The position numbers and the translations under genes are program-made. A model generated the notes under the pieces. That model did not search any database. It was not told the origin of the DNA and saw nothing but the letters and a program-made list of their open reading frames with translations. A stretch of DNA of 64,000 nt from positions 1 through 64,000 of the IMG/VR virus record IMGVR_UViG_3300042386_001233. One strand, 5' to 3'. Numbering within the stretch: the stretch's first letter is position 1; every line of letters begins with the position of its first letter. Shown one piece after another: positions 2,022 to 31,700 of this stretch.

Positions 2022-2030
2022 GGAAAAAGT

Positions 2031-2803: not shown

Positions 2804-2843
2804 TTAAAGACTAGACATTCTATCCTTATAAAAAGGTCAAAAT

Positions 2844-3353: not shown

Positions 3354-3363
3354 AAAGAATATT

Positions 3364-4371: not shown

Positions 4372-4375
4372 TATA

Positions 4376-6739: not shown

Positions 6740-6772
6740 TAGATATTTATTCAGGACAAGATAGGAATTATT

Positions 6773-7516
6773 ATGATTAATACAAAATGTAAAGAATGTA
6801 TGTTCTCACATTCTGATGGAGAAAAGAACGACAACCCAATATGCTCTAAGAATATTATAGAACAAATAAAGGACATTAAAAATATTAAACAAGAAGATGG
6901 ATTCAATATAATAGAAAATTATGCTTGTAGATATGGTTTTTCCAAGCAAATTTATGAACAGCATAAAGAACAGTGGGATCCGCAGGACTTTGAAAATAGA
7001 ATGTTGGAAAATAGTAGAATAAGGTATTATCTATTATTAGATTGCTATGATCCTGATCTAGATTTTAATCATATATTACAACAGATACCAAAGCTAAATA
7101 TGCCTCCTAAGTCTGTATCTTTTATGTTTCGGAGTTTAAACTTTAGGCCCTTTGTTCAAGAACATCAAGATTTTTTATTATCTAACTACAAGAATATTCG
7201 CTGGAAGGCTCATAACTTTTTGGAAGAAATGTCTTTAGAAGAAGGTATTGATCATATTTTATCTACGAATGCAAAAAATAATGACACATCAATTTTTTTG
7301 GTGTATAATGCTAAAGATTTACAATTTCTGGATCGTGACGTTAACACTATTAACAAAAATATGATTTTATATCAATCACCAATGATAGCGATTATTGACC
7401 GCAATAATACATTATATAGATTAGCTATGTCGTTTGATAATTATAAAGTGGCTAAAACTTTGGGTCCAAATTTGATCCCAGTACTGACTCAAGAAAGCAA
7501 CATAGTATACTATTAG
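6773..7516 (+). CDS. Hypothetical protein with N-terminal Cys cluster
   Basis: 247 aa; CKEC...C...C near the N-terminus; no family recognised. Confidence 0.6.
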   Translation: MINTKCKECMFSHSDGEKNDNPICSKNIIEQIKDIKNIKQEDGFNIIENYACRYGFSKQIYEQHKEQWDPQDFENRMLENSRIRYYLLLDCYDPDLDFNHILQQIPKLNMPPKSVSFMFRSLNFRPFVQEHQDFLLSNYKNIRWKAHNFLEEMSLEEGIDHILSTNAKNNDTSIFLVYNAKDLQFLDRDVNTINKNMILYQSPMIAIIDRNNTLYRLAMSFDNYKVAKTLGPNLIPVLTQESNIVYY

Positions 7517-7531
7517 TATTTCATATTATTT

Positions 7532-7537
7532 GGTGTA
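7532..7537 (+). promoter_or_regulatory. GGTGTA motif, candidate late-promoter element
   Basis: Intergenic, 43 nt before the first tube-like gene. Confidence 0.4.
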
Positions 7538-7574
7538 AAGTTCTAATACACGCACAATACAATGGGAGTTTCAA

Positions 7575-10020: not shown

Positions 10021-10037
10021 TTATAGGAGATTTTTAA

Positions 10038-11138
10038 ATGGCGAATAATAATAGAGTTTTTTACGGTTCGCAGGTAGCTCAACTAATGCCAGCCACTACT
10101 GGTAATAACTATACTAGATGGTATCAGCCACTAGGCGTACAAAGTGTTGGATTCACTAGCACTTTTGAAACAGAACAAACCTTTCAGCTTGGAGCTATTG
10201 ATATTTATTCCATTGCTGAGAATGTTCCTAATGTTGAAGCAACAATTTCCAAAGCTTTAGACGGAACATGTCCATTGTACTTAATGTGTATGGGTGGACA
10301 AAGTGGAGTTGCTGGTGCAAATCTAACTTCATTTTCAGCTACAGAAATGAATAATAAGGGTCTTGGTGCTTTAGCAAATAATACTGTTAATTTTAGACTC
10401 GGAATATATAATGATACATCTTCTAATGTTGCTGGAACAACTAGTGACTGGGTTCTATGCTCAGGAATGTATTTATCAAGTTTAAGCTTTACTTTTCCTG
10501 TTGATGGTAATGCAACTGAAGAAGTAACGTTAGTTGGTAATAATAAAAGATGGAGTCAGAACGGCGGCATAGGAGGCAACATGACTGCCGTTGCTCCAAC
10601 AGGCGAATATGCTACAGCCAAGAAACTAGCTCGTCGTCAATTCATTAATGTGAATGGTTCAGTTATGCCAACCGGTAGTGGTGGTCTCCCAACAGGACTA
10701 GCTACTAACATGGAATTGCATTTACAAAATATTAGTATCAATGCTGATCTTGGAAGAGATCAAATTCTTGAGCTAGGATCATTTGCTCCGTATCATAGAT
10801 ATGCTACATTCCCAATTGAAGTTACTAGCGAATTTGAAATTATCGCAACAGAGGGTGACTACGTTAGTGCTAATGACTTCCTATTCCAAAGCGGATGTTC
10901 AGTTCGTTACACCAACATTGGCAACTTCCCTATACAGCTACAAGTATGTGGCAGTGGTACCTCAGATGCTTTAGGCACTTTAGATATTTACCTTGGTAGT
11001 GGTAATCAATTAACATCTGTTAATTATACCGGTGGTGACACTGGTGGTGGTAATGCGTCAGTTTCATATAGCTTTAGAAATTATAATGATTTCTATATCA
11101 AGGCTGTTCATTCGTATTCTGGTGTTCCATCAGTATAA
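10038..11138 (+). CDS. Tail tube-like protein, paralog 3
   Basis: 366 aa; same conserved blocks; GGAG SD-like site upstream. Confidence 0.65.
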   Translation: MANNNRVFYGSQVAQLMPATTGNNYTRWYQPLGVQSVGFTSTFETEQTFQLGAIDIYSIAENVPNVEATISKALDGTCPLYLMCMGGQSGVAGANLTSFSATEMNNKGLGALANNTVNFRLGIYNDTSSNVAGTTSDWVLCSGMYLSSLSFTFPVDGNATEEVTLVGNNKRWSQNGGIGGNMTAVAPTGEYATAKKLARRQFINVNGSVMPTGSGGLPTGLATNMELHLQNISINADLGRDQILELGSFAPYHRYATFPIEVTSEFEIIATEGDYVSANDFLFQSGCSVRYTNIGNFPIQLQVCGSGTSDALGTLDIYLGSGNQLTSVNYTGGDTGGGNASVSYSFRNYNDFYIKAVHSYSGVPSV

Positions 11139-11214
11139 AGTTGGTTTACTATAAAAGACGAGTGGTTAATTAATTTATCAATATAGACTTATAGGATTAA
11201 TAAAGGACATAGGA

Positions 11215-11388
11215 ATGGAAGAATTATTGAGTGTGGTTGGTCGTTTGTATGTTGATATGCTTCATGCACAGAAGTATATTGAGAGTATGCAAAACCAACT
11301 CAAAGATAAAGATACGGAAATTATAGCATTAAAATCAAAATTAGCAGGTTCGCCAAAAGACAAGGATAAAAATGCTGAAGAGGTATGA
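11215..11388 (+). CDS. Small coiled-coil protein (57 aa), not in the ORF track
   Basis: MEELLSVVGRLYVDMLHAQKYIESMQNQLKDKDTEIIALKSKLAGSPKDKDKNAEEV*; AGGA-containing leader; ATGA overlap with 11385. Confidence 0.7.
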   Translation: MEELLSVVGRLYVDMLHAQKYIESMQNQLKDKDTEIIALKSKLAGSPKDKDKNAEEV

Positions 11389-12395
11389 GTCAGGAACTAG
11401 AACAGTTTATATATCGTATTATAAGTGGTAAGTTATTATTTAATCATAATAATAAGACATATATTCTTGTTCCTCCTAAGCCCATAGTAAAATATAGGGC
11501 TAATTTATTATATGTTTCTATCTTAAATGATGAAAAATACAATGAATGGATAAGAGCAGAAAATTTGGATAGATATATGACCTTTTTAGAAGTTTGGAAT
11601 AATGAGATGACTAGCTTTGTAGAGAGATCAGAGAAGCAGATAGAGGACTTGAAAGTATCTCTATTCAATAATAGACTTAATAATAAAATGACAACAAGAA
11701 CTCGTAATCAACTAGCTAATCTCAGAAGAAAACTATCCGAACTACAACTAATACGACAAACATACTATGCTCAAACCTTAGAGGGTTATGCTGAAAGCAT
11801 TAAGTATGAGTATATTATTACCAGTACATTATTCTATAATAAGAAAAAAGTATTTGGTAAATTTGGATCATTACAAACATCATATCAAGACTTTACATCA
11901 GTAGTATCAGAAATCAACACCCATGCTTTGCAAACACCAGATTATAGAAGAATTGCAAGATCAGAATTATGGAGATCATTTTGGACAATAGATAAAAACA
12001 ATATTTTTCCTGGGCCAGTTTCATTGTGGACAGAAGAACAACGAACATTAGCCGGATATAGTTCCATGTATGATAGTGTACATGAACATCCAGAAAAGCC
12101 CAACGACTCAGTAATTGATGATGACGATATGCTTGATGGTTGGATGATTAGTCAACGTCGCGCTATGGAGAAGAACAAACTACAAGAATCTATGCTTAAA
12201 ACTAATTCCAAGCTCGGTAAAGCACAAGAAGTATTTATCTTTACAGATAACGAGCAAGGAGTCAAAGAGGTTATGGGTATGAATTCAGAAGAGGCAAATT
12301 TAGCTATTGCACAACGATCTAACATACTAAATAAAGGGCAATCAATAGACCATGCCCGCTTGCCAGACGTTCAAAAAGATTTACTAAATAAATAG
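11385..12395 (+). CDS. Putative tail assembly chaperone (shared G-like domain plus extra C-terminal domain)
   Basis: 336 aa. The N-terminal ~165 aa align with the 12690 gene; lies between the tube genes and the TMP. Confidence 0.5.
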   Translation: MSQELEQFIYRIISGKLLFNHNNKTYILVPPKPIVKYRANLLYVSILNDEKYNEWIRAENLDRYMTFLEVWNNEMTSFVERSEKQIEDLKVSLFNNRLNNKMTTRTRNQLANLRRKLSELQLIRQTYYAQTLEGYAESIKYEYIITSTLFYNKKKVFGKFGSLQTSYQDFTSVVSEINTHALQTPDYRRIARSELWRSFWTIDKNNIFPGPVSLWTEEQRTLAGYSSMYDSVHEHPEKPNDSVIDDDDMLDGWMISQRRAMEKNKLQESMLKTNSKLGKAQEVFIFTDNEQGVKEVMGMNSEEANLAIAQRSNILNKGQSIDHARLPDVQKDLLNK

Positions 12396-12405
12396 GATAT
12401 AAAAT

Positions 12406-12693
12406 ATGACAAATTATCAACAGTTACTCTACGACGTAGAAACAAAGTTCAAAACAACAATGATTGGCTCATTAGCCAGATTTGAAGAAACATTTGGTCA
12501 TCTATGGGAAGAAGAAGGACCTGATCAGCAAGAATATTTGGAATCTTGGGAATATACTCGAAATGCTATTCTTAACAACGGGAACAAGCAAATGAGAGCA
12601 GCATTAGATGATTTGTCAGACGCTATATTGGGGTCATATAAAACAAAATATACTTACAAGTTCAACAATAGGAATCATGGAGATAAACAATGA
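12406..12693 (+). CDS. Hypothetical helical protein (95 aa)
   Basis: ATGA overlap with the next gene; no family recognised. Confidence 0.65.
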   Translation: MTNYQQLLYDVETKFKTTMIGSLARFEETFGHLWEEEGPDQQEYLESWEYTRNAILNNGNKQMRAALDDLSDAILGSYKTKYTYKFNNRNHGDKQ

Positions 12694-13592
12694 AGACAAA
12701 GACTTTCAAGGCCACTATCGACGGTAAGGAAAGAGAATTTTTAGTCAAGACACCATCTTTAACTGATCAGAGAGAAGGTCAAAAGGTTTATAATCAAGCC
12801 TTTACTGATGCTATCAAGAGTAAAAGTGTTGTTAGGGCTAAATTAGATGATTTATTAGAAGATCAAGGACTATGGAATGATGAGAAACAGGCTAAGTTCA
12901 CATCACTACAAAGAGATCTGCTAGACGGTGAAAAAAGACTAGCAAAGGGCGGGTTTAGTTTGAACGAAGCCAAAGACCTTGCTATTAAAATGAAGGGCGT
13001 AAGAGATGAAATCAGAGATCTAATCAGTGTTAGAACGTCTTTAGACAACCATAGTGCCGAAGGTCAAGCAGATAATGCTAGATTTAATTATCTGGTATCC
13101 GTATGCGTGGTGTATAGTGATAACAAAGAGCCATATTTTAGGAATATGGAAGACTATTTAAATCGAGCTACTGAAGAAGTTTCTTTATTAGGTGCTCAAA
13201 ATTTGGCTAACATGATTTATGGATTGGACAATGATTATGAGACTAATTTGCCAGAAAATAAATTTTTGAAAAAGTATAGATTCGTTGATGATAAGCTAAG
13301 ACTAATTGATAAGAAGGGCAGATTGGTAGATGCTGATGGCAGACTAATAGACAGCAGTGGCAGATTTATTGATGAAGAAGGCAATTTTGTTGATAAATAT
13401 GGCAATAAGGTTACTTCAGACGGAGATTATATTGTTGAAACAAAACCGTTTTTGGACGACAATGGAAATCCAGTTGTTCTAGAGGAAGAGAAAACAGATG
13501 CACCAGCAACCACTGAGACACCTCCAACACCTCCTCCTGCCCAACCATCTCCTACAGAGGCTCAACCCCCAGTTCAGCCAACTAATAGTTAG
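12690..13592 (+). CDS. Putative tail assembly chaperone with 7-residue DxxGxx repeats and Pro-rich tail
   Basis: 300 aa; immediately upstream of the TMP; paralogous to 11385. Confidence 0.55.
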   Translation: MKTKTFKATIDGKEREFLVKTPSLTDQREGQKVYNQAFTDAIKSKSVVRAKLDDLLEDQGLWNDEKQAKFTSLQRDLLDGEKRLAKGGFSLNEAKDLAIKMKGVRDEIRDLISVRTSLDNHSAEGQADNARFNYLVSVCVVYSDNKEPYFRNMEDYLNRATEEVSLLGAQNLANMIYGLDNDYETNLPENKFLKKYRFVDDKLRLIDKKGRLVDADGRLIDSSGRFIDEEGNFVDKYGNKVTSDGDYIVETKPFLDDNGNPVVLEEEKTDAPATTETPPTPPPAQPSPTEAQPPVQPTNS

Positions 13593-13703: not shown

Positions 13704-16700
13704 ATGGCTACAGCTTTTAATTTGACAGCACAACTTAATTTACGCGGTCCAAATAATGTTAACAAGATTGTTGGAGACATTAAGAAACAACTATCTGGCA
13801 TAACTGCTAATGTTAACTTGAAGTTGGACCCTAATGTTGCCAAGAACGTTAAGGCTCTTGATGCTTCGTTAAAATCGTTAAATTCTACATTATCTAGAAC
13901 CTCTACGACAGCAACTTCTGCAGCATCTGCGATATCTTCTTTTGGTAGGGCTGTTAATTCTGTTAGCATAAAAAACATACCGTCACAAATTAATGCCACG
14001 GTATCTAGTATGAATAAGCTAAATAAATCTAGCGGAACCATTGGACAGTCTTTGAATGAAGCAGCAACGGAGATGCAGGAGTTCGGTAAACAAGCAGGAT
14101 TAGCAATTAGACGATTTGCTGCATTTACTGCTGTTACTGGAGTTATTTATAGTTTAACTAATAGTATTAATCAGGGTATTCAGGCTTTTATAGAATATGA
14201 CAAAGAATTAGTTCGTTTACAACAAGTCACAGGTCAAACTGCCGGAGGCTTAAAGCAACTACAAAATTCAATTTCTCAATTAGCAACTGGTTTGGGTGTT
14301 AGTTCAAAAGAATTAACAACAGTATCAGTTACACTAGCACAAGCCGGTTTAAGTGCAAAAGATACCGAAAGAGCCTTAAGAGCATTAGCATTAAGTTCAC
14401 TAGCCCCATCATTTGACGACATGAATGAAACGGTAGAAGGTTCTATTGCTTTGATGAGACAGTTCGGCATTAGTGCTGGACAATTAGAACAAGCCCTAGG
14501 TTCTGTCAACGCTGTTGCTGCTGCGTTCGCCGTAGAAGCCGATGACCTAATTACTGCTATTCAGCGTACCGGCGGTGTGTTTGCTACTGCTAGTAAAGGC
14601 GTTAGTGAAGGAACAGATGCTCTTAATGAATTTATCTCGGTGTTTACTAGCGTGAGAGCAACCACTCGTGAAAGTGCAGAAACTATTGCTACTGGTTTAC
14701 GTACTATCTTTACACGTATTCAGAGAGGTAGCACAATTGATGCCCTTAAGGAGTTCGGTGTTACTCTAACAGACTCAGAGGGCAAATTCGTTGGAGCCTA
14801 TAGAGCCGTACAATTACTAAGTGAAGGATTGTCTAAACTAGATCCAAGAGATATTAAATTTTCTAGAATTGTAGAAGAGTTGGGCGGCTTTAGGCAGATT
14901 GGTAAAGTTATTCCTCTTATCCAACAGTTTTCTGTTGCTCAGAACGCTCTTAAGATAGCACAAACAGGACAATCTTCTTTAGCTAAAGATGCAGCAACAG
15001 CACAATTGTCATTAGCAAATCAAATTCAAAAAGTTCGTGAAGAATTCTTTGCGCTGTTTCGTGAAATTGGACAAAGCAAAGGCTTTCAATCCTTACTCAC
15101 TGGAGTATTAACACTAACAAGAGGACTAATCAAGCTTGCTGATGTTTCAAAGAGTTTGCTACCTGCGTTGAGTGTCGTTTTAGCATTTAAGGGTGCTAGT
15201 GCTTTAACTCAATTTGCTAGCGGTTTCAGCAAGGGTTTCAGGCCGGGTGGTGGTAAACCAGAAAAAGAAAGACCACGATTCGCAGACGGCGGAAGGGTTA
15301 GAAGATTTGCTACTGGTGGTGTAGTGCCCGGTAGTGGTGACAGAGATACTGTTCCAGCTATGCTAACTCCTGGTGAGTTTGTGGTGAGAAAACAAGCAGT
15401 TAAAAGTATTGGAACAGCACATCTACATAGAATAAATAAGCGAGCTAAGGGTGGCCCAATTACAGTAGAAAAATTAAAAGATATTAATCCCAATGCTGTT
15501 CAGCCTGACTATAGAAATACAGAAGAAGCAAAAAATAAAGTAGGAGAAAAAGACCAAACTTGGAGCACATACAGAGATCAAGGCAGGAGAGGGAAGGTCA
15601 GGTCAACAGCTGTTAAATATATGCAGCCAAGAGACGAAGTATACGGAGATGTAGAATACGTACCTATTCCTGATCCTAATAGGTCAGAAGTTGAAAAATA
15701 TTTTGGCAAGATAGTTCTTAAAAAAGGAATTAAGTCTATCAATCCAAAAGATAAGAGAATAAGTACTGCTTATGAAAATTATGCTCAGGATAAAGTAAAA
15801 ACAATAGGAGCTCGGTATAGTGGAGATTATGATCCTTTAGATTTTGAAACCGGAGATGTTAAATTCTATAGTTCTGAAGAAAATATTCAAAAATATGTTT
15901 CGATAAATAAAGTTCTTTCAAAAAGACTCAGACATCAAAATAAAGATAATAGAATTAAATGGCAACCAAACTCTCCAGAACAAAAAGAGTTAGAGCCAAC
16001 AACAATATATCATCCAACAGACTTAACGGAAAATAATAATTTAAAGAAAAGAATTTCAGACTGGATTTTATTATCACAAAATCAAAGAACAACTCAGGCG
16101 ATTAGAGAGGGTGACTCTTTTAGTTTTGGTGGATTAGTTCAAAAATTTGCCGAAGGAGGAGAGGCTGCTAGGATTAGGAGAGTTGGAATTATAGATAGTG
16201 ACGTATTGCGAGATAAGATTAACGCTGAAAAAGTTGCTCAAGGAATGGAGTCAATCGGATCAGATAGTATACAAGACTATACCATACAACTAGCCAAGCT
16301 AGGCGTACAAAAAAGAAAGTCTGGTGACCTCAAAAAGTTTAGAGTTATTGCTGGAGCTGCTGGTAGTGGAAAGAGCAGCTTAGCTACTGGAGTATCTGCT
16401 AATGATAACGCTACTTTGCGAAAAACTATTAGATCTCATATTATAACTCCACAAGATCTGGATAGTGTAGATGAAATTTTAACTATCACAGCAAATGTTA
16501 GTGATGCAAAATTAGAGGGCTATCTTAGAGATGCAGATAGAACATATACCGTCTCATCCTCTACTAAGGCCGAGCAAGATCTAATAAAAAGAAATAAAGA
16601 ATCCAGAGACATCACTGGACAAGGACTTTACGGCAGAGAACCAGGGAAAACAAAGGGCGTTCCTGCAGATTTTGGAGTAGAAGAAGCAACACTAATCGAT

Positions 16701-19700
16701 CAACTAGGATCAAAAAATGTTGTACTAGGAAGAAAAGAAGATGCTGAAGGTAATCTTACAAATAGATTTAGAAGAAAAAGAGAAGATGAATTACCAGAAA
16801 TAGTACAAGCAGAAGGCTTCTATACTGGTGGTTTTGCTCCTCCAACAAGAGGTCACAGAGGCGCTTTTGATACATTGCTAGCAAATGTAATTGCCAAAAA
16901 TCCAAAGGCAACACTAAAAGATATTTTGGTTTCAGTAGCTCCTAATGTTGCGATGGTCGAAGGAAAAGAAGGACTAGAGCACGCTGCTAGATATGGTATT
17001 TTTGATGCTGATTTTAGATCATTATTAGCAGATGTAAACTTTAAAGGAGCTATGATCTCTCAGGATGCACAGTCTACTCCTGGAATACTTCCCAAGGTTA
17101 TGGAAGTTCCTAGCGAAAACAATCGTAGAAAATTTGCTCGACTCAAAGGAGCGATGGCTATTACTTCCGGAAAAGAACAGGGAGTTTTAGGAAAATACGA
17201 GAGAGCAGGAATTGAGGTTACTGACATTCCAAGAATAGAGGATATTAGTGCTACTAAAGTAAGAGAATTATTATTTAGTCAAAATTATACTGAACTTGAT
17301 AAAATAGTTAATCCTGAAGTTGGGGCAATACTTAAAGGTAATCAACCACAGCTTAAAAATAGATCAGTAATGGTTCCTGTTTTATTAGAAGAGCTTCATA
17401 AAGCAGCCGAAGCTAATACTGTTTTAGCTAACCAAAAAGCAGATGATATACTTGCTAATGCTCCTGGCGGTCCATATGCTAATGTTAGTAAAAAATTAAA
17501 AACAGAACACCCAGATATTGCAGCACAAGTTAAGTCTATTAGAGAACAAAGAGATCAGTTTAAGAAGTCTATTTCTGGAGCTAAAGCCCATTCTATTATT
17601 AGTGAATTAGCAGCTGCCTATCCTGAAATTTATGGTATTGATCCTTCTCGTAGAGCAGCAACAGCAGCCGCTAGCATATCAGCAGAAGACGCTAGGTCTC
17701 ATCTAGGAGATAGAGTAAAATCGCTAGTGTCAGGAAGAGGCGCAGCAACTCCAGAACCTTCTCTGCTAGAGAGTATCAAGCAAAATGTTACCAAACAATT
17801 AGCAATTCCAAAGGGTTCAGGTACTTTACCCACAGACTCTAAGACAATTACTAGCGCCTTCTTAAATACCAAGATACCGTCTGATCCAACATTCGGTATG
17901 TTTTCAGGCAAGACTATAGATCCTGGTATAGTAAAGAAAGTTTGGAGACAAACATATCCAGGACTATCAGAAGATAAGACAGCAAGCTATATTGCTTTAA
18001 AAGAATGGCTAGAAGCACAATATAATACTCGTACCGGCGCCAAAACTGAAAAACTGTCTCAGGCCATTCAAGAATCTAAAATGGTTGGATTGGTTGGTAT
18101 GCTACCAATCGGACACGAAAAACTATCTGGCCCATTTACATGGATGCTGGGTAAAAATGCTGCTGGCGAGGATGTTTCCGTTACTGCTTCAATTATAGAA
18201 AGAGGATTGGGCAAACAATACGAGGAAGAGATTAAAAAAGCACAGAGTCACGCTGAACAAGGATCAGAACTTCTAGCTTCTGGACTAGCGTCTAAGATGA
18301 AAAAACGACCAGAGTCTTTAAGATCTCTTGATAAAGCTCAGCTTGAAACTTTAGGTCAGGGAAATATTGAAGGAGCATATGTTGAACAGGCATTAGCCAG
18401 ACTATGGGCCAATTTAGACAATGTTAGTACCAGAACTCGACCAATAGACTACCCAGACGGTCTCGGAGAATCTGCTGAACTATTTCCTGGCATATCTCCA
18501 ACTATGCCGACAGAAGTTAAGAGAACAATTAATAGTGATAGTAGAAGTGATGCCATAGAAGAATTCCAAAGGTATTTCAGACTTATTCATGCAATACCAG
18601 AACCAAAAGCCAAGAAAGAAGCAGTTAAAGCATTAGCTTCAGGCGGAGAAGTACAAAGATTCATGGCTGGTGGAGTAGCAACCAAAACCAGAAAACCAAA
18701 AGAAGTTTTTGGAACTGGAGAAACAGCATTCCCATCAAGAATATCAAAAAAATATGCCGAAGAACAACATTCAGCTAGTGAAAGCTTAAGAGCTAAATTA
18801 TCATGGGATAAGTATCCTAAAGATGAAAGAATAATGGTTAACGAAGATAAGGTACAAGAAGCCTATCAACAACCATTTGATAGAGATAGGTTTACCTCAT
18901 CATTTAAAGAAAAAATTAGTCGTGACTCGCTCTTTGAGAGAATGTCAGATTTTGCTAAGTTTATAGGACTGCCACAAGAAGACTTATCTCTAGCACTACC
19001 ATTACAATTGGATTTTGGAGCAAGCTCAAGAGGGGGTGGGTTGGGAATGTTCTCTGCTGCTGAATTCGGAAAAGGAGCATCTGGAATTAGGCCATATGAA
19101 GGCTATGATCTATCTAAATTTGGATATGGAGAAAAAGAAAAGCAAGAATCTTATGGATTAGAAAAACTTATAGCAGCAAAAGAAAAAGAAATAAAAAAGA
19201 TTAGAAAAACTCCTACTGAAACTTTTGATGATGGTAGTTTCTCTTTTGACAGTGAGGCATTTCAGAAGACTTATATTGAGTTAGATAATCTTAAAAATAG
19301 ATTTTTTAGATTAAAAGACCTAAAACGTGAAGCAGAAAAGGCGGCCCTTGCTGAACAAAATACCATTTCCTCAGCTACTGGTCGTGGAACCATCGGCTTT
19401 GCTCCTTCTATGGGATATGCTTCCACCACACAGAATCACTCGCTATATCATGAAATGACACATCAGCTATTTGAAGGATTAAGAACAAGATCAGCAGAAA
19501 GCTTTACTAAATATAGAGATAGAGTATCGTCTTTATTCTCTGGAGATAATGACGATTTAGCAGATGCTTTTGACTCTTTAACGGCAGTAACAGCAGGCGG
19601 CGGATATACTAGTGCTGATGTTGTATATGGTAGAAGTTATAAGTCAAATAACTTAAGTCAAATACTTTCAAGCTATTATCGTCAGAATCTTGATTCTTCT

Positions 19701-22700
19701 AGGGGCACTACTCCTATTCCTGAAGATATAACAAAAAATCTTGCTAGTTTAAGTACTCAAAGTACAGCTGCTAAAAGAGCTAGAGAGTATAGGCCAATAA
19801 ATCCTCAAGTTAACGAAGCTTTACTTCAAGGAGGTGCTAAGTTTGGAATGACTCAAGAGAAGATTAATAGAATGGAAGATAATGGTAAAGAAGAATTCTT
19901 AACAACTTTAATAGAAAAAGCTCCTCAGCTTGATCAAAATTTACAAGGGATTTTAGATTCTACCTTAACAGAACTATTAAGTGGTGCTGGAATTCAAAGA
20001 CAAAAATATGCTTCAGGAGGCAAAGCTTCAAGAAGAGTAGACTTTGAAGCCGGAGTAGGGCAGTCACCATTCGGAGGTTCGGTATCAAAAAGATTAAGTC
20101 AATCCATTTACAATCTGCAAAAGAACACCGGACTAAGTGATTCAGAATTCAATGAAATTAAAAAGACGGCAGATACATACGGATACAATGAAGAAGAATT
20201 TAAAGAATATTTAGCAAAAAGAATACAAGAGAAGAAGAACAAAGAGGGGTTAAGAACTAATCCATCAGCACTAGCACAGCAGTTGATGCCACAAACAAGG
20301 GTGTCAACACCTAGACAGCTAGCATTAGCACAAGCATTAAAAGACACCTCTAATGATATCGGATATAGACCATCTACTTTAGAAACAATAGCTCAAGCAA
20401 GAACAGACGTTGGTAACGCTACTAGATATGCCGTCGGCGGTATTGCTAAAGTTGGCAAGAAGGAAGACAAACAGTACGGTCAAATTAGCATCACTGAAGA
20501 CGCCGGAATGATTAATGTTGGATATCAAAAGGGTGATAATAGACAAGGATATGCTACTGGTTACAAGATGAGGAATAATCTATATTATGTTGGATTGTCT
20601 AAAGCGACAAAAGGCTATGGACCAAGATTGTATGACGTACTGATGGAAGCTGTAACAGAAAAGGGCGCCATGCTGACATCCGATAGGTCATCAGTCAGTG
20701 AGGATGCAAAACGAGTATGGGAATATTATTTTAAAAATAGGGGTGATGTTAAGAAAACTCCACTTAAACCATCTGATTGGACTGTTAATTCGAATTTAAT
20801 AGATCCAAAACTTTACGGCAAAAAAGAAACTTGGCCCCCAGCAACTGATCCAGCTTGGACATTACAGACAGGTTATAGTAAATCTCCTAAATTAATAACT
20901 AATACTAATGAGGTTATAAGAAAGAGATCAGGTGGTCGCCTTAGTTTTGAAACTGGTGGCACTGTTCCAGCTTTAGTTAGTAATGGAGAAGCTTATATTC
21001 CTCCTAAGATTGCTAAAAGAATTGGTTATAGTAATCTTAATCGTATGAATCAAGCTGACCGTAACGGAATGAGCAAGTTCTCTAGTGGTGGTATTAGTGT
21101 GTTTAAAGGCCCTGGTACCGGTACTAGCGATAGCATTCCTGCTAATTTGCCAGTTGGTAGTTTTATTCTTAGAGAGAAAGCTACTAAGGCTTTGGGTTTT
21201 AATAAAGGAGGTGCTGTACCAGCACAAAGATTTGCTACTGGAGGTGGCGTAACAAGCATGATTATGGAATGGCTGTCATCAGACATGACTGCTAGAACCA
21301 AACCCAAAATGGCTCCAAGACCTGATGTTGTAAACAGGGCGAGTGTTGTTGCTTCTAATGATACCACCAAAGCTTTAGATATTCTTGTTAAATCTCTTAA
21401 TCAATTAGGTTTAAGTGCTGCTAATTCTGCAGATATTTTAAATAAGGGTGGGCAAGTTAGTTATAAAACTATACAAAAGGCTTTAGCTGAAGATATTAAA
21501 AGATTAAAAATTTCAGGAGCAAGCATACAAAGCATAGTTGCAGCAGAAACTACACTTGCTAATATTCGTAAAAAGAGTAAAGAAGAAGTTACTAAACAAA
21601 AAAATATACAAGGATTAACCAGTGCTAGAGGCAACTCTTCTACTAAGATTGTTGGAGGTCAAACAATTGGGGACCTACAAGCTGGTTCTGGTGCTGGACA
21701 ACAAGCAATAGAGACACAAGCCCAGATGCTTGCTGCAGCAAGAATCAGAAGAAGAGGAGGAAAGGTAACAGAAAAACAACGATCTGAAATAATGGAATCA
21801 TCGTACATTGATTCTGCTTCTAGAATTACTGGAATTAAAAAGAAAGAATTTAAAGCTGCTGGAATTAGTGGTGGAGATATTCAAAAATATATAGCTGAAT
21901 CCATGAAGGATCGCAAGAGCTTGGCGCAGATGGATAAGCAGCTAATAGCACTCAAAACTAATGAGTTGACGAATAGCGCTGCCTACATAGCCGCCTCTAA
22001 CGCAGAACAAAAAAGAATGTTGACAGAAGTTCAACAAGCAACGAAAGAAGAAATATCAACTCGCAGAAAGATTATCAACGATCTAGCTGCTCAAAATGGA
22101 ACTAAGGGAGTTGGTGCTGCTGGGTTGAGAGATACTAGAAATAGTCCCATACTTAATCAGATAAAAGGATTTATAAAATCTCCTGGTAAAGTGATGGGTG
22201 GAATATCTGCTGCTGCTGGACTAACTGCTGGTGCTTCTGATATGATTGCGAAAAATATTTATAATATGAGCACAACAGAAGGCCAAGGTAAAGCAGCAAA
22301 AACATCAGCAGCTATTCAATCTTCTGGTACAATTCTTAGCACCGGAATGGCAGCAGCATCACAGATGGCAGCTATACCAGTTATTGGTCCCTATGTTGCT
22401 GCTCTTACTGCTGTTGGAACAGCTGCTGCGGCTGCTGCTGATTATTTTTATGATTTTACCGGTGCTCAAAAGGCTGCCACAGTAGAATTTGAAAGATCAG
22501 TAAGAGCTAAAGAAATTGGAATTGCTATGGATGGTTTGGATAGAGCATTCCAAAATTTTGAAAAAGATATGGGTAATATAACCTTACAAAAGGCTCTAGA
22601 ACAAGCTATTGGTAATACTTCTTCTTTACAAATTAAAGATAATATGGCAGAAAGAGATAATGCCAAAGCAGAGTTTTCTCTAAAGAATAGAAGTTGGTCG

Positions 22701-25700
22701 GATATTTTTAGTGGTAACTTTAAGGGTTCTGCGCAGATGGATGCTCTTGAACAAGGAGCTATGGATAGTGAAATGTCTCAAAAATTATCGCCAATATCCG
22801 ATAAGGCTATGGCGTTATATGATAAACAAATTAGTAGCGGAAAAAGTATAGAAGATATTGTTAATAATGTTCGCACAGGAAATAAAGACGCTGTTAATGC
22901 TGGCGCTGCCGTTGCTTTTAATGCTAATCCCAAATTGTGGTCAGAGTTAGAACAAAAGGTTAAAGCATCAGGAGACGCTTCAGAAGCTAATGTTCTGAAG
23001 ATTAAACGAGGAATTGTTGCTAGAGAACTCTTAACCAATGCAGAATTACAAGCAGCTGTAAAGAGATCCAAATTAGAAAGAGATATGGAGGCTTCTAATA
23101 GAGCTGGTCGTAGATTAGCTGAGACTTTTGATCATATAAGTGAAACTATTGATCAGTCAATTCAGAGAATGCAACGAGAGTCTGAAATTCGTCAAGCACA
23201 AGCTAATGACAGAGTAGAAGCTAGAAGAGGAAATGCCGGTTTTGATGAAAGAGCTGTTAATAATAGAAACGTTGGAGTATTAACAAATCCAAAAGCATAC
23301 CAAAATGATCCTAGACGCATAGAAGAAGCTATTAGAGCAGGAAGCAGTGGTATGTCCCCAGAGCTTGCTCAAAAAATGGCTGGCGGAGCTAGACTAGAAG
23401 CTACTTTGCCTAATGTAATGAGAAATGCGATATCTACAGAACTTAAGAGTAATGCTAGTTTAGGTCTTGATGAAGCAGCTGATGCTGCCAGAAGAAAGGG
23501 AACAGAAGCGATTAGAAATTCTGGATTATCAGAAGCTGATCAAAAAGTTGCTATAGATAAATTAAACGCAAGAATAGAAGATGAAAAAAAGAAAGTACAA
23601 GATAATGAAAAGGGAACCCCAGCAGAACAAGTTGATTCTTTTACTGACTCTATAAGTGATCTTGGTCCAGAAATAGCTAATATATTTGGTAATGCAGGCA
23701 AAAAATTAGATGATATTATCCAAGCCAGACAAGGAATCTATGATACTTTTGCAAAGAATCTTCAAGCCGCTTCAGAAGCTGCTAAAAAAGCACGAGAATT
23801 TTTCAGTAAAGCAAGAGATATAAGATATGACGCTGGAATGGACTTGAGAGAAGCCCAAACTGGCGTAGGAGAAAGCTTCTCTGAGGCAAAAGCTAAATCT
23901 GATAGTAGTATTGCAAGATTAACTGGCGGGGTTACTGATCCTCAAGCTATTGGTAGAAATATTGATGCTTTAATGGCACGGCGTGACCAGCAAATGAAGG
24001 ATAGGGATGCTGCACTATCAAATCCCAATTTAACACAAGATCAACAGAAAGATGCTGCGACTAAATTTGCTAAAGATATTCAGGCTACTAATAATGCATT
24101 AAACGATAATAGAGAAGCATTAGACAAGTTGGCTAATAGCGCTGAAGTAGCGCAAAAAGCTCTAGACGAAGTTAAGAATATTAGAGGATTACAACAAGAT
24201 AGAGAAAACTTTGTTAATCAATTGCTTACAAACACTCCAGAAGAAGCAGACAAACTTAATCAAACCTTTATTAGACTTCAGCGCAACTTGTCTGGTGGAT
24301 TAAATAATGCCTCTAATCAAAGAGATGCCCGCAATGCTTTTAATGATACATTACGTCGCACAGGAAATCTGAGAGAAGCTACTCGCGCCGGAAATACTGT
24401 ATTAGCAGACCAAAGAAAACAAACCCTTCAGTTGATGCAAGATCCTGGATTTAGGGGCATGATGACCCTTAATATGAAGAACCAGGGAATGAATGATCAA
24501 CAGATAGACAAGCGATTCAGAGACCAAGAAGGTATGTTGATGCAGCAAATGGCTATTGAGAGTGGATTGATCAATAATCCAATGGTTAGACAAGCCCTTG
24601 CTGCAAAACAAGACCCTAATGCTGATCCGGCCATGAAACGTGCTGCCGATCAATTCTTGCAGGCCACTGGTTTACAGGCCAAAGCTTCTGAGGAACAAGG
24701 TCGATTAGAATTAGCTAATGTACAGAACTTGCTCGTAACAGCTACCGACGAATTAAGAATGTCTATAGATACCTTAACAACAACCATTAATGGTTCGTTG
24801 GGTAAAGATGGAGAAAGAGTTCCCGGTGTTGCTGGGCCTGTGGTTCCTGTTCCAGCCGGGGCCAGAGGGGTGGCGAGACCACCTCGTCCCATGGCTACTG
24901 GTGGAAAAGTTAAGACTCAGTATGCTAGTACTGGTCAATTAATAGACTTTTCTCCCAAGGGGACTGATACTGTTCCTGCCATGTTAACTCCTGGAGAATT
25001 TGTTGTTAATGCCAGATCGACCGCCAAACATCTACCATTACTAAAAGCTATTAATAGTGGGGCTGGAGTTGATGCTACTTCTAACATGAGTAAAGGTGGA
25101 GTTGTTTATTTGGATAATGGTGGATTAATAGACGAGTTTAGAAAAATAGATGCTAATAAATCCAATTTTTTAGAAGTTGGCGAAATAGATCTTAAAATGA
25201 TTCAATTATTAGATAGAGATAAAGATAATAAAGTTTCCTTTGGAGAATATTCTTCAAGAGTAAAGAGCGATGGTAGTAGTGGATCTTCAAGATCTGGTTC
25301 AGGATCATCGGTTAAGAGTGGATTTAAAGCTCAAGATATGAGTTTTGAACAGTACTATAATAATAGAGCACAAAAATATGCAAAAAGATATCAAGGTACT
25401 GGAGACGAAGTACCAAGAGACACAGATAAATTCGCTAACGGAGGTATGGTTACTCCATATTATTTAGCAGAAGGAACAAATAGACCGCTATCACGACCCG
25501 TTATGGTAGCACTACCTCCCAAAAAAGATCCTATTGAGACTGCAAGAGCTGCTCGTAAACAAGGAGTACCAACTAAGAGAAGGCCATCTTTAGTTCCTGG
25601 AGATCCTAGAGCAAAAGATGCTGAACCTAGCTTTTTTAGATTAGACCTCAATGAAGACGGTATTTTGGACAGAAAAGAAGGATATCCATACCAAGACTTA

Positions 25701-28700
25701 GATAAAGATAAAGATGGAAATATAACACAAGAGGAATGGAAAAATAATGTATTAGCACGAGCAAAGGTTCGTAAGCTAGAAAATACCATAAAAATAATTG
25801 AAAAAGAAATAGCTGAAGGAAAACCTGTTCCTGTAAACTTTGAAGCAATGAAAAGAACACTAGGTTTCGCCAAAATAGATGCAGGTATGGCCGCTGCTCC
25901 TGGTGACAATAAGGCTTTTATCGCTAGACAAAAACGTATTGATGATAATATGAATAAAAGATTATTGGGGGGTGGTTCTATTAATAATCCTGATGGTTCT
26001 TATGTTTTTAATAGAGAACTTAATAAGATTTATGATCGTAGATCAGCTTTTGAAGAAGAAAGAAGAGCACAGAGAGCTAAGGACGAAAACGCAACGGACG
26101 AAGAAATATTTGATCGCACAGTAGAGGCCTATGGGGCTGGAGACTCTAACTATTGGCGCAACAGTATGGGAGTCACCGAACTGCCAAATGTTTATGATAA
26201 TTCTAGAACTTTAGACGTTATTCGCAATGAGAGTGATCTCTCCAGTAAGGGAGATCCTAATGGAGAAAAAACTAGAGCATATATAGACGGATATATACAA
26301 TCACAAGGAGCAAGACAACAAGCGGACAGAGTGGCTCGTGGTATTGGGGCAGAGATTGATTCTCCAGATATTGCCGTAACAGGAACTCAGGGACCAGTAG
26401 ATAATCTTAACTATTTAATAGACCAAAAAGAAAAGGGCAGAGTAGCAGAAAAAGCAGCAAGAGACGAAAACTTTAAACAAGAGAATAAAAATAGAGAAGG
26501 CGCTGATGCAAGACAGGCAAAATTGGATCAAAGAGATAAAGAACTAGGTATAGATACTAGCGGCATTAATCGAGATATATATGAGAGTGGTGGAGGTTTT
26601 TCAAATCAGCCAGGAAGTGGCAGAAAAGTTACGATAGAAGAACAAAAACAAAGAAAAAGAGAAAAGGCTATAGCTGCTAGGTTTTCATTTACAGATAAAA
26701 CAGGTAAATACTCCACTACTGGAACTATTGACAAAGTGGATTTTGAAAAAGGTACTGTTAGAATAGCTAAAATTGATCCAAAAACTGGTGAGCCTATTAC
26801 TAGAACCGTTCCGGTTTTTGCCGATGGCCAAACAGAAGAAGAGATTAAAGCTTCTGGTAGAGATCCCGAAAGATTTAAGGTTGGAGAGAAAGAAGAACAA
26901 GTATACACTACTGTACCCCTAGACAAACTTAGTGACCAGTCCAGAGACAAGGCCAGATCCCATGGTTTGGAAAAAGAAGCAGACAAAGCCAAGGCTGGTG
27001 AAAACTTCTCAATAGGGGAGGCTACTGGCAAAAAGCGTACAATATCTGGTAAAATATTCAGAGTAGACGAAAAGGCCGGAACAGCTGTCGTACAAAGAGA
27101 TAGTGGTAAGCTGGTCACTATACCATTAGAGAAACTTGCTCCAGAGTCTAGAAATATAGCACTAGATCAAGCCAAGACAGCTACTACTGTTACTGATTTA
27201 ACGCAGAAACAAATGGATGCTGATGTTGGTAATATTGATGTTACTTCATCATTACCAGAACCACCAATTCCATTAGCTGAAGACTTTACTGATAGAGCAA
27301 ATGAAGTTCGTCAAGAGACGATGAATAATGCTGCTTTAGAACAGACAAAGATGGATCAGTTGCCGATGATGTCTGAGCCGGTACCAACTTCGGGCACTAT
27401 TGATCCTATTACTGGCAAGGTTGTTGGAAATAATGTTTCTATGGACTTGAATCCAGATGGAACTCGTACACCAGAACAATTAAACATATTAAGTCAGCAA
27501 GCTACCAGAGATGCCGATAGGCGTAATTCTAACGCAAGATATGAGGAGCTTAGAGGTCGATCAAAAGCAGAGGATGCATACGACAGATCATGGCTTGGAG
27601 AAAACTGGCCCAAAGAATGGGGAGGAGTACAAAAACCAAAACGAAGATTAACTACAAAAGAACTAGAAGAACTTGGAGCGATGGAAAGCGAGAGAGGTGT
27701 TCCTGCATTATCAAGATTAGGAGCTAATACACGAGCAGAACAAACAAGAAGATCAGCAGGATTAGACGAAGCACAAATTGAAAGTTTGAGTCAACAAAAA
27801 ACAGAACAGTTTAAAGCTGAACTTGAGAAAAAAAATGACGCAGAAGGTGGGGTGGCTGTTGGACTAGCTGCTCAAAGAGCAGTAGTTCCATTATTGGCTG
27901 GTGCTACAGCTATTGCCGCCGCTCCTGCTTTAGTTCCAGCAGGAATAATTGGGGCTGGACTTACTATTGCTGGGGGTGTTACTGCTAGTTTGGGCGCTAA
28001 TAAATTACAAGATATGGCATTAGAAGGTACGGATTTTGATAAGAGACAAAGAGAATTGGCAGAAAAAAGGCCAGGAGCAACTGCTGTTGGTTCTTTATTG
28101 CCAGGATTACTAACGGGCAATCCACTGACTGGTGCAACCACTATGGGTCGAGCACTAGCAACAAGAGCTGCTAGCGGAGCTACTGAAGCAGCATTAGGGG
28201 CCGGTATCAGAGGAGCAACTAGTGGTGGGGATTTTGGTACTTATGAAGATTTCCGGAATGACTTTCTTTCTGGAGTTATTCTTCCAACGTCTAATTTTGG
28301 AAGTAAGGGATCCAGAAATTATAGTCGTCCAGAAGGTCCAGCAAAACCTACGTCTTTAAAGGATGTTGCAGCAACAGTTAGAGATGAACAACTAGCAATC
28401 AGAGAAGAAAACGTTCTTGCTGGTAATGAGAGAATAGCAACTAAACGAAAACAAGACGAAGTTAGAAAAGCGGCACAAGCAGAACAAAGAATCAAAGATG
28501 AAGTAGAAGCAGTGAAAGAATCAGGAAGAGAAAAGGCTGTTTTTGATTTTATGAAGCCACTCATTACTCGTCCAGATAAGAGTAATAGCCCTATAGTAAA
28601 GGGCGTAGCAGACATGGTACTTAATCATCATAGAGATTTGATGGCTAGAGTAAAATCTAAGGATATATTAGAAAAAGGTCGTGGTCTGAATGATGAGCAG

Positions 28701-31700
28701 ATTACAACACAGCTTACAGATGCTGGAATAGATCCTGAACGAGCAGCAGCTATAGTTAGAAAAAGAACAGAAGCCAATAATAAAGCACAATCTGATCTTG
28801 CTTTGGAAAGAGGAACAAGAAGAGCGGAAGCTAAAGAGAGACTAGATGCTGAATATAGAAAAGAAGTTGAAGGAGTTACAGATCCTAAAGAAACAGCAAA
28901 AATAAAGGCTAGATTCCAAGAACAATTAAATAAAGAAGCTTCTTTGATTGATGTCGATATTAACGACAAGACGTCAGCAAATAAAGCCGGTATAACAGTT
29001 CAAGAGCTGAAACAACAAAGAGCAGCAGAAGCTCAAGCCAAAGATAAAGCAGAGTCTGATAAACTAATACAAGAGTTTGATTCTACTCTAGGATCAAGTA
29101 AGCCAACAACTATTGATAATCTTCCTATGGGAGAACCTCTTGATTTAGGTGTGGACCCGCTTGCGCCAATAACATCTGCCAAAGATAATGCTGCTACTAC
29201 GGCAGCTAGTACAAAACCAGTCGATGCTGCAACAGTAGCAGCAAAAAACCAGACAGTAGTCAAGGCAGCAGAACAAGAAAATACATCTTCGCTACAAACA
29301 TCAGCGATACCGCAGCCCAAACCCTATAATCCTACAGATTATCCTATTATGGATAGTATTATGAGAGGAGGAAAGAACGGCCATTATGGTCCGATGGGTA
29401 CTACTAATATAACAGGTAAACAAAATATTCATGGAATAAGCGGATGGAAAACTAGACTCATACCAAAAGACGACGCGTCTGCAGCAAAAATTAAAGAATT
29501 TTTAGATACTCATCCAGATATAGGGGAATATAAGTTAGCATTAAATGAGGGACCAGTACCAGTATTTAGTGTCTATTTCAAAAAGGGCACCAAAGATGAA
29601 GCACTATCTTTTGCACAAGCTAGTGAAAAAGGACTAAAAGATAGTTTAGATCCTCGTTTATATCAGGGTGCTGATACTCTGCTAGAAGGGACAAATATTT
29701 CCGCAAGATTTGATGCTAGAGATCTAAAGTATGAATCAGCATCATCAATTATAGATAGACAACTAGAGAATTCTCCTTTTAGTAGAGGATTTTTAAAAGC
29801 TGAAGAACTGAATCTACAAATACCTGCATCAAATACGGCAGCTGGGTCAACGGCTAGCAGAGCAATGCCAAGCATTACTGCTGGCACCAGAGGAGTACCA
29901 GATACTGGGTATGTTGATTGGTTAAAAACAAAAAAGTTTTTGGCGAAAGATCCTAAAAAGATAGCTAGTCTAGATGCAGAGATACAAAGAGCTACTAACG
30001 TAGCAGATGATTGGCTAAAAGAAAATATGTCAGACCTCTACAGCTCATCTGCTGAACGAACAACTAGAGAATCAACTACTCAAACCGGTGGGGTAAAACC
30101 ACAACAACAAGCAGTAGTTGAAACAGCAATCAGAGATGCCACAAGCACACCAACCAAATCCGGTTTTGTTCGAGACAAATCGTTATCGACAGACAAAGTA
30201 GATGATCTAGCTTCTGCCGGATTTGGAGTTATAAGTCCAGACCAAGAAGTAGAAAGTGTTATAAGAGGAGCAAGAGAAAATTCTCTTGGCGTTTTAACTA
30301 AACCAGCAGCGTTATTACAGCCAGAAACATACCAAAAATATGCAGACCAACTATTAGAACTAGAAAAATCAGGAAAAATAAAAATAACCAAAGGCGCTTC
30401 ATTTGGTACTAGTGGCCAACCAAGTATATTTGTAGGAAAACCAGAAAATGTAGATACTCTTGCAAAAGCTTTTGAATCTGAAACAGCAAGAACACGAGAA
30501 ATGGGGGTTCCAGCATCAGATGAATTTCACGAAACGGTAGGAAAGGCACTAGGATATAGTAAAGATAGTAGAGAACTATTTAGATTAAGAAAAGATTGGG
30601 ATAAAGCAGGATTAGATATAGATACTATTCAAGATAGATTACAAACTAGCCGTGGTGCTGCTGCTAGATATATGGTATCAGAAATTAATAAGGCCAAAGA
30701 ACAAGCATCAGTCGAGCAAGGAGTAAAAGAATCAACAAACCCGCCCATCAAACCTCCTATTGATGGAGATGAATTTGAATTAGGAAACTTGGGAGATGAA
30801 ACCCCAGAAGAAAAGGCTCGACTAGACGCACTATATCCTCCGGGTTCTGAGGGATTTTTGGGCCCAATAAAGCCAGATAATGTATTACCTGAAGCAAGAG
30901 CAGAATCACAAGCTCGCACAGTCGAAACCAAACCATCCTCTTTTGAACAAAATCCAGAAGACTTTACAAAGCTTATTGATGAAACTCTTTCTCCATTCCC
31001 AGAAGACTTTTTCCCAGATGGTTCTTCAAAACCAAATGCTAGAGTAGAAGCAGAAATTGATAGTAATACAGTAAACGCTTCTTCTCCAGAAGCTTTAAAA
31101 GCCTCTGCAGAAGCTCAACAAAAACTAGCAGCACAAAAATTAGCAGCAAAATCTCCAGAACAAATATCTGTAGAAAAAACATATGGTCCTTTATATAGAG
31201 AAGCTAAAAAAGCCAACGATACAGCAGAGATGGCCAGAATACGATCAGAAGCTAATGCAGAATTTAAGAAACGCTCTCAAGAAGCTTCAACCAGAGCTGA
31301 AGATAAAAAGAATAGTTTCCTTCCTGTTATGGGTAAGGTCTTAAAGATAGCTGCCCCCATTGGAACTGCTATAGGTTATGGATTAGGATCATTATTAACC
31401 AGGGATAAGAGAAAAGAAGAACCTCAAGATCCAGCCTCTAAACTAAAAAATGCCTCTAGTTTACAGGAAGTCTACGATTTAATAAGCGCAAACGATAGGG
31501 GAACAAAAGGCTTTAGCGCAGTAGAAATTGCCATGAAGCTTAGAGAAATAGACCCTAAAGCATATGACAAGAGCGGTGATGAGTATGTTAATCTAGGAGA
31601 ATTGGCAGGAATGCCAGATAGTGCATATGATGCATACTTAGACAGATTGAAAGACAGGGCAGCAACAGCAAAACCCGTCAACTATCCAGATGTTCCATCT

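Follow-up and report, generated by a model that had tools for sequence, protein, structure and literature searches.

The window analysed here is a 64,000-nucleotide stretch of DNA, positions 1 to 64,000 of IMG/VR virus record IMGVR_UViG_3300042386_001233. It encodes a giant tape measure protein (TMP) in whose N-proximal part a P-loop kinase-fold domain is followed by an adenylyltransferase-like domain of the HIGH family. On balance we favour the view that the two form a self-contained, catalytically intact two-enzyme cassette, which lies in the N-proximal 'cargo' part of a siphovirus-type TMP and is delivered at infection. The features on which this view is built are as follows, with residues given in amino acids (aa) of the TMP open reading frame (ORF).

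13704..33068, plus strand: giant TMP gene, 6,454 aa, a single ORF without internal stop.
13842..15236, plus strand: N-terminal tape measure core domain, aa 47-511, with PF10145 and PHROG matches.
16146..17633, plus strand: whole conserved cassette, aa ~815-1310 (~490 aa), made up of a QKFAEGG junction, kinase, nucleotidyltransferase and trailing helices.
16200..16799, plus strand: P-loop kinase-fold domain, aa 833-1032, with Walker A GAAGSGKS at 16353-16376.
16806..17348, plus strand: HIGH-family adenylyltransferase-like domain, aa ~1035-1215, with GGFAPPTRGH at 16827-16856 and ISATKVR at 17244-17264.
17349..17633, plus strand: helical C-terminal extension of the cassette, aa 1216-1310, with AF2-predicted helices at model residues 351-420.

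All three signature motifs lie in frame within the ORF, exactly where the original prediction, made from the sequence alone, had put them. The first, VIAGAAGSGKSS, spans 16344-16379, and the Walker A motif inside it starts at 16353 (K890 of the ORF). The second, FYTGGFAPPTRGH, spans 16818-16856 and includes H1051, with GGFAPPTRGH at aa 1042-1051. The third, ISATKVR, occupies aa 1181-1187 (S1182, R1187) from position 17244. Each motif pattern was found once in the 6,454 residues, and from the composition of the protein only ~1e-9 ordered co-occurrences would be expected. The motifs persist in relatives with as little as ~27% identity. A HMMER scan with the 434-aa two-domain piece (the module) against 1.84 billion representative proteins returned 83 clusters, nearly all of them proteins of 3,000-7,300 aa in which the match lies 600-2,000 residues from the N-terminus; no free-standing relatives of the module were found in that scan. 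Alignment of 51 modules, down to 25% identity, shows that K58 (the Walker A lysine), R146, H219 (the histidine of GH), R264, R273, Y333, R345, S350 and R355 (the serine and arginine of ISxTxxR) and, in the helical extension, R388 are invariant. At least 90% conservation is seen in the kinase half for G52, G55, G57, D69, R74, T76, R78, D86, D113, R136 and D157, in the HIGH motif for the G, P, T and G that accompany the invariant H, and in ISxTxxR for the T.

The protein that carries the tandem is a TMP on several grounds, as had been proposed. PF10145 (PhageMin_Tail) matches aa 188-382 with an E-value of 5.5e-21 (75.8 bits against a cutoff of 33.2), and five PHROG TMP families match the N-terminus (aa 26-511), among them phrog_28 on aa 47-504 (E 9e-22) and phrog_4211, phrog_167 and phrog_1533 between aa 28 and 511. 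Homologues are annotated as 'TP901 family phage tail tape measure protein', and language-model neighbours of the centre of the protein (aa 3000-3800) are TMP-like. The gene order is also conserved: the TMP gene comes after genes for proteins of ~336, ~95 and ~300 aa and before those for large fn3/FGE-sulfatase proteins, an arrangement seen in two distant contigs as well, and the proteins neighbouring the TMP in this order have no family assignment of their own.

How is the module distributed among such proteins? A search with the N-terminal TMP domain brought up at least 554 giant TMPs, which measure 3,550-7,800 aa and lie on contigs of up to 248 kb. In a listed sample of 120 that was not chosen for the module, 66 TMPs have both domains, 54 have neither and none has one alone; among the 100 of these not already found through the module search the corresponding counts are 46, 54 and zero. 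On a tree of the N-domain, presence of the module changes at least 25 times by gain or loss, compared with 39.6 times when labels are shuffled. The two parts of the protein have had different histories: P0022, whose N-domain is the most similar of all (91% identical), has a module only 39% identical to that of the window, while in another (P0002) the N-domain is 64% and the module 85% identical. With this sporadic, all-or-none distribution and these discordant histories, the module is an optional cassette that is swapped between TMPs. A profile search of proteins of 130-420 aa likewise found no free-standing relatives of the transferase domain.

The borders of the cassette are visible in the same comparisons. 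BLAST coverage by 127 distant module-bearing TMPs rises from 28 to 105 at aa ~820 and drops from 108 to 63 at aa ~1310-1320, and TMPs without the module align to aa 819-841 and resume far downstream, with different sequence between. A short motif, (K/R/Q)(F/Y)AxGG, occurs at aa 525, 534, 814, 1652, 2101, 2241, 2458, 2509, 3909 and 6176 and marks borders of conservation blocks; the copy at aa 814-819 corresponds to window positions 16143-16160. In 94 of 122 module-bearing relatives a copy precedes the module by ~17 aa (0.21 expected per window), and the motif may serve between cassettes as a junction, a linker or a signal for processing.

An AF2 model of the module (pLDDT 89.5, pTM 0.84; pLDDT 91.3 for the kinase half alone) predicts, at these values, a fixed two-domain unit. 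The modelled transferase half has the traits of the HIGH superfamily, namely (H/T)xGH, ISxTxxR and a Rossmann-like alpha/beta fold. This half was compared exhaustively with 48,161 PDB representatives using VIA-align. The 31 chains with Z >= 8 belong essentially all to the HIGH-motif superfamily, and 13 of the top 15 neighbours are adenylyltransferases of nicotinamide mononucleotide (NMN) or nicotinic acid mononucleotide (NaMN). PPAT scores highest (Z 14.1-14.3, rmsd (root-mean-square deviation) 2.6 A over 143-144 residues), followed by these 13 NMN/NaMN adenylyltransferases (archaeal NMNAT, NadM, NadD, eukaryotic NMNAT and NadR; Z 11.0-13.6), of which M. jannaschii NMNAT scores 13.6 and E. coli NadR, below PPAT and NadD, 11.0. 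TmcAL (Z 10.6), FAD synthetase (9.9), ATP sulfurylase (9.5) and cytidylyltransferases (8-9) complete the set. Profile matches point to the same superfamily: PF01467 matches 18 of the 51 modules (best E 5.4e-7) and PF16581 matches 40 (best 2e-7), while in the window's own module PF16581 appears only at E 0.02-0.04 and PF01467 not at all. Searches of that module with Pfam, NCBIfam and PHROGs otherwise gave nothing significant, only matches confined to Walker A. Against the PDB, the transferase profile matches 9x6f over the whole domain (profile positions 10-160; E 1.4e-5), MJ0541 NMNAT at E 1.2e-3 and the NadR proteins of H. influenzae and L. lactis at E 0.2-0.5; phmmer with the transferase piece found nothing in the PDB. 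Placement in the citrate-lyase-ligase/TmcAL branch was suggested by an ESM Atlas shape search, by AFDB Swiss-Prot and by a profile match to MJ0951 (E 2.5e-8). It was dropped as the best assignment because PPAT and NMNAT rank clearly higher in the exhaustive comparison and because the MJ0951 match is confined to the C-terminal ISxTxxR-plus-helix motif, which is common to the whole HIGH superfamily.

PPAT (CoaD), the top structural match, also shares the TxGH variant, and the PPAT-DPCK fusion of eukaryotic CoA synthase is a known joining of such an enzyme with a P-loop kinase that phosphorylates a 3'-OH. The module differs from PPAT in that profile matches reach E-values of only 0.03-1 and in that its domain is ~20 residues longer, with a beta-rich insertion; synthesis of CoA by a virion protein has no evident biological rationale. 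A substrate related to nicotinamide adenine dinucleotide (NAD) is the leading named candidate, if a tentative one. Its most specific form is the one raised in the original prediction, a NadR-like salvage pair of nicotinamide riboside kinase and NMN adenylyltransferase, delivered from the virion and rebuilding NAD+ against defences that deplete it (Thoeris, DSR or SIR2-HerA, for example). We judge this form unlikely, and the broader proposition that the cassette acts on an NAD-type molecule in general somewhat less so. The comparison turns on 9x6f, which is Bas30_86, the phage NadR-like enzyme of NARP3 that converts nicotinamide riboside to NAD+ and counters Sir2-HerA (PMC13464706). No other solved structure matches the transferase profile as well over the whole domain. 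Like the module, Bas30_86 joins a P-loop kinase and a HIGH adenylyltransferase in one polypeptide (9x6f/9x6h, PMC13464706) and has the same TxGH and ISATxxR motif variants (PLTRGH, compared with PPTRGH here), and the invariant R264 and R273 of the module align with arginines of Bas30_86. The prevalence of NMN/NaMN adenylyltransferases among the top neighbours and an accessory, often exchanged distribution, typical of counter-defence genes, point the same way.

Other points speak against NadR. The order, kinase then transferase, is the reverse of that in NadR and Bas30_86, where a ribosylnicotinamide kinase (RNK) would be C-terminal; the kinase has no RNK-type signal (no AAA_28 match in the 51 modules) and resembles human NRK1 (Z 4.9) less than zeta toxin (Z 7.8). 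The NMN-contacting residues of Bas30_86 are K10, S37, E80, P84, Y86 and G89 (PMC13464706), and in what is a remote alignment the corresponding positions are variable here, only one proline in the aligned loop being at least 90% conserved; with so remote an alignment this comparison carries little weight. No PnuC-type transporter partner was found among the neighbouring ORFs scanned in window positions 87-13592 and 33089-59698 (21 ORFs including the TMP with Pfam, and six more, at 39687-45454 and 49676-53282, with PHROGs only). PPAT, at Z 14.1, is an equally good structural match. Furthermore, a handful of TMP copies per virion would supply few enzymes, which by our estimate, at typical turnover, would need tens of minutes or more to refill a pool of ~1e5-1e6 NAD molecules against an active NADase. 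NARP3, finally, is a free cytoplasmic protein expressed after infection and not a virion protein. Of the salvage proposal, then, the kinship of the transferase with NMNAT/PPAT and with 9x6f holds, while the order of domains, the type of kinase, the variable NMN loop and the lack of a PnuC among the neighbours scanned speak against it.

All structural neighbours of the kinase half are P-loop kinases. Zeta toxin (6epg) tops the PDB rankings of both Foldseek and VIA-align as well as that of the ESM Atlas; among AFDB clusters it stands at rank 2, ahead of all other named matches. The alignment with 6epg (Z 7.8) sets model residues 1-200 against chain residues 56-232, with 148-149 residues aligned, and thus covers the helices before the P-loop as well. 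UMP kinase (Z 7.0), AvrRxo1 (6.9), adenylate kinase (6.8), polynucleotide kinases (4gp6 6.1, Pnkp1 5.2, PNKP 4.8), dephospho-CoA kinases (5.1-5.8) and human NRK1 (4.9) follow. In the ESM Atlas the kinase half matches a PF06414 cluster with a TM score of 0.59 over 155 residues; PF06414 itself matches a single one of the 51 modules (E 0.017), and a profile of the kinase half gives only Walker-A-level matches in the PDB. The module shares with the zeta toxin/PezT/AvrRxo1 family (PF06414) the Walker A motif and its best fold match, and differs from it in the low scores and in an unusually short helix after the P-loop, followed by a conserved, family-specific coil, DNAxLRxTxRxPILTPxD.

In zeta and AvrRxo1 kinases the groups that become phosphorylated are sugar hydroxyls on nucleotide conjugates such as UDP-GlcNAc and NAD. 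Could the cassette be a toxin-like effector directed at the host? A kinase of this type would phosphorylate essential UDP-GlcNAc, UDP-MurNAc or NAD and so stall cell-wall synthesis or metabolism at entry, with the transferase supplying or further modifying the substrate. The kinase ranking, including AvrRxo1, an NAD 3'-kinase, agrees with such a role, as does the presence in the same TMP region of ADP-ribosyltransferase (ART) domains, which are classic host-modifying effectors; moreover, fusions of zeta-like kinases with virion MuF proteins are on record, and it has been proposed that they weaken the wall as injection proceeds (PMC5512222). We nevertheless regard this as quite improbable: the match is weak (Z 7.8, TM 0.59, one PF06414 hit), UMP and adenylate kinases score nearly as high, and the strictly co-inherited adenylyltransferase is left with no clear role. 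The polynucleotide kinases among the neighbours raise another alternative, a nucleic-acid end-modifying pair in which a polynucleotide-kinase-like domain and an adenylyl-transferring HIGH enzyme heal or cap the end of the entering phage DNA or repair RNA or tRNA cut by defence nucleases. The TmcAL-type enzymes that match the transferase (Z 10.6; MJ0951 at E 2.5e-8 locally) act on tRNA, many arginines of the domain are invariant, and the N-proximal part of a TMP adjoins the DNA end in the virion. We give this alternative only a slight chance, since the small-molecule enzymes PPAT and NMNAT clearly outscore TmcAL, the MJ0951 match is to a superfamily-wide motif, and no nucleic-acid-binding domain was identified.

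Taken together, the AF2 folds, structural neighbours and conserved motifs agree with the predicted succession of a P-loop kinase and a HIGH-family nucleotidyltransferase. In the modelled region a P-loop kinase of the zeta-toxin/nucleotide-kinase type is rigidly joined to an adenylyltransferase that falls, within the HIGH family, into the PPAT/NMNAT structural group; the subfamily and the substrate do not follow from these folds. Because the two domains are strictly co-inherited and their relative geometry is confidently modelled, the two activities would be coupled on one substrate, a small molecule of nucleotide type. Where a kinase is fused with a HIGH transferase, both sequences of action are known (NadR, RibF and HldE; PPAT plus dephospho-CoA kinase). 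If the kinase acted first, X-OH would become X-P, and X-P and ATP would then yield AMP-P-X, as in NadR, RibF and HldE. If the transferase acted first, the kinase would phosphorylate its product, as in the pair of PPAT and dephospho-CoA kinase or in the conversion of NAD to 3'-NADP by AvrRxo1.

Why place such enzymes in a TMP? The cassette is probably accessory enzymatic cargo that the TMP carries and that is ejected into the host at infection. The virion would hold it as a part of the TMP and expel it before the DNA or together with it. Once in the cytoplasm, as no other compartment offers ATP, it would refold and work, possibly as an immediate-early host-takeover or counter-defence enzyme after the manner of the TMP-fused RNA polymerase of phage P23-45. 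In that phage the N-terminal 1,200 aa of gp96, a TMP of 5,002 aa, are an active virion RNA polymerase, which is present in virions as full-length TMP and transcribes the pre-early genes, before phage gene expression (PMC10770324). Both proteins are giant TMPs (5,002 and 6,454 aa) with an enzyme that requires the cytoplasm in their N-proximal ~1,200 residues. They differ in the enzymes themselves, a two-barrel RNA polymerase there and an unrelated kinase plus adenylyltransferase here, and in that the polymerase is essential and fixed in its lineage whereas the cassette, present in 55% of relatives, is optional and passes between TMPs. P23-45 is a very long-tailed siphovirus.

A second precedent is given by the polyvalent proteins that Iyer et al. 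(2017) surveyed in phages and conjugative elements and whose repertoire includes ART and MuF-fused zeta-like kinases (PMC5512222). They too are large virion-associated proteins, predicted to be injected with DNA, in which unrelated enzymatic domains occur in varying combinations. The carriers in that survey are MuF, ArdC-N, metallopeptidase and similar proteins, and the term tape measure protein is absent from its text (PMC5512222). A text search for 'HIGH nucleotidyltransferase' was also negative, the nucleotidyltransferases listed being protein-modifying members of the Pol-beta superfamily (PMC5512222). Delivery of an enzyme from the virion, which the original prediction held to be new, was thus preceded both by the gp96 polymerase (PMC10770324) and by injected polyvalent proteins (PMC5512222). 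TMP-fused and polyvalent virion enzymes are known already; new is this particular pair of enzymes.

Several points weigh against delivery of an active enzyme pair. A folded cassette of ~50 kDa, in several copies, would exceed the lumen of the tail tube and would therefore have to travel unfolded or extended. Proteolysis might process the TMP, or the enzymes might do their work in the producing cell, ahead of assembly. Neither domain attains the Pfam gathering threshold in the sequence of the window itself, and the zeta-toxin match of the kinase half is weak, its Z of 7.8 falling within the 'middling' range of the tool. The module-bearing set obtained by the module search is biased by construction. 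In addition, the module had no tblastn match in 50,697 phage genomes (INPHARED), so that no cultured phage there carries it, and the TMP N-domain has only matches to TMPs 23-31% identical there; blastn recovered only a motif of 45-100 nucleotides in common with cyanophage TMPs. One cultured cyanophage, Nodularia phage vB_NpeS-2AV2 (KU230356.1 124378-134592), has an annotated TMP of 3,404 aa without the module, showing that TMPs of several thousand residues exist in isolates.

An alternative is that the cassette is not delivered, and either acts in the producing cell within unassembled TMP or has a structural or assembly role, as an ATP-binding plug or chaperone-like element with vestigial motifs. 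Incorporation of the cassette into the virion and its ejection are inferred, TMPs are made late, when some NAD-depleting defences fire, and 54 of 120 homologous TMPs do without the cassette, so that tails can be built in its absence. Vestigial motifs are hard to reconcile with catalytic residues that stay invariant in both enzymes across deep divergence. Delivery is favoured by the fusion to a virion protein in place of a free gene, by the lack of free-standing relatives, by the ART cassette in that same part of the TMP and by the precedent of P23-45, and we consider a cassette that stays behind very unlikely.

The same N-proximal region holds other enzymes. In relatives without the module, the stretches examined in its place contain a PF03496 ART domain (E down to 1.6e-15). 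Using a hidden Markov model built from the relatives' ARTs, we detected an ART cassette in 27 of the 120 TMPs, before, after or without the module: the kinase-transferase pair alone occurs in 49, ART alone in 10, both in 17 and neither in 44, and their order varies. The ART consensus retains the catalytic R (LYSGxGR), STS (FLSTS) and ExE (ExEFILP). ART carriers include P0153, P0155, P0108, P0126 and P0166, all outside the window, and P0153 has two copies (aa 887-1082 and 1495-1700). When a functional link was looked for, the module and the ART cassette, which uses NAD, proved not to be associated among the 120 TMPs (Fisher p 0.39), a further point against NAD salvage. P0173, a homologous TMP of 6,161 aa, has precomputed SNase (PF00565) and SHD1 (PF03983) domains, which may be a further type of cargo. 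Within one TMP family, unrelated enzymatic domains combine variably, and ADP-ribosyltransferases, kinases and adenylyltransferases all require cytoplasmic cofactors. One might go further and see the N-proximal third of giant TMPs as a polymorphic platform for effector delivery, on which cassettes delimited by (K/R/Q)(F/Y)AxGG are exchanged by recombination. The present cassette would then be delivered by the virion and, within seconds of infection and ahead of phage gene expression, would make or modify an adenine dinucleotide, either NAD+ or a derivative or signal related to defence, as a pre-loaded answer to NAD-centred immunity. This extension is speculative, and we hold it to be a shade less probable even than NadR-like salvage.

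Beyond the cassette, two further features of the TMP are listed here.

17661..18263, plus strand: downstream block, aa ~1320-1520, found only in module-bearing TMPs.
27879..27989, plus strand: hydrophobic, membrane-type TMP segment, aa 4726-4762, from a Kyte-Doolittle scan.

The downstream block is conserved and apparently globular, is common to ~51 of 127 module-bearing relatives (~40%) and to none of 54 module-less ones, and has no match in Pfam or PDB profile searches. For aa 1311-2400 a weak language-model lead to GNAT acetyltransferases scored only 0.64-0.66. A weak PF07332 holin-like match coincides with the hydrophobic segment. The public collection's gene call (P0088, 6,352 aa) begins 102 residues downstream of the first ATG (14010 compared with 13704); relatives align from TMP residue 1, which makes 13704 the probable start. 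If the whole protein of 6,454 aa were an extended helix, with 1.5 A for each residue, it would measure nearly 1 micrometre. Some 2,200 residues at aa ~3900-6100 (window 25400-32000) are conserved only in one or two of the closest relatives, while both flanks are widely conserved, so that this stretch forms a hypervariable 'ruler'. Weak matches to EF-hand calcium loops lie at aa ~3831-3851 and 3997-4016. The 14-residue sequence DTVPAMLTPGEFVV occurs in three identical copies at aa 548-561, 3755-3768 and 6199-6212 (window ~15345-15386, 24966-25007 and 32298-32339), with diverged copies at aa ~2410-2500; its first copy is the source of the only nucleotide matches, to TMPs of Nodularia phages and to cyanophage S-SM2 (phrog_13338).

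The window as a whole is phage-like, with ~36% GC and all long ORFs on the plus strand, and no tRNA genes were found in it. Large presumed tail or fibre proteins lie at 87-2021, 33089-36598, 45476-49228 and 53285-59698. They include a 644-aa DUF5122 beta-propeller (E 1e-156), two proteins with FGE-sulfatase-like domains, one of 1,169 aa and one of 1,250 aa that has DUF285 repeats besides, and an ORF of 2,137 aa to which no family matched. One relative is labelled as a Sphingobacteriia metagenome-assembled genome, the only informative label as to host or lineage.

What would follow if the cassette is ejected and active? TMPs would then be modular vehicles for metabolic or nucleotide-modifying effectors, beyond their roles as ruler, channel former and, in one case, polymerase carrier, and at least 554 giant TMPs of uncultured phages, whose genomes reach ~248 kb, would join the systems of virion-delivered host takeover or counter-defence. 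Near-identical TMP backbones with and without the cassette offer a clean comparative design, and the 490-aa unit is small enough for expression and assay. Should the NAD reading be true, phages would have, in addition to NARP1-3, a fourth way of manipulating NAD, and a pre-packaged one; should it be false, it is still a tractable question on what substrate this deeply conserved pair of kinase and adenylyltransferase acts within a virion protein.

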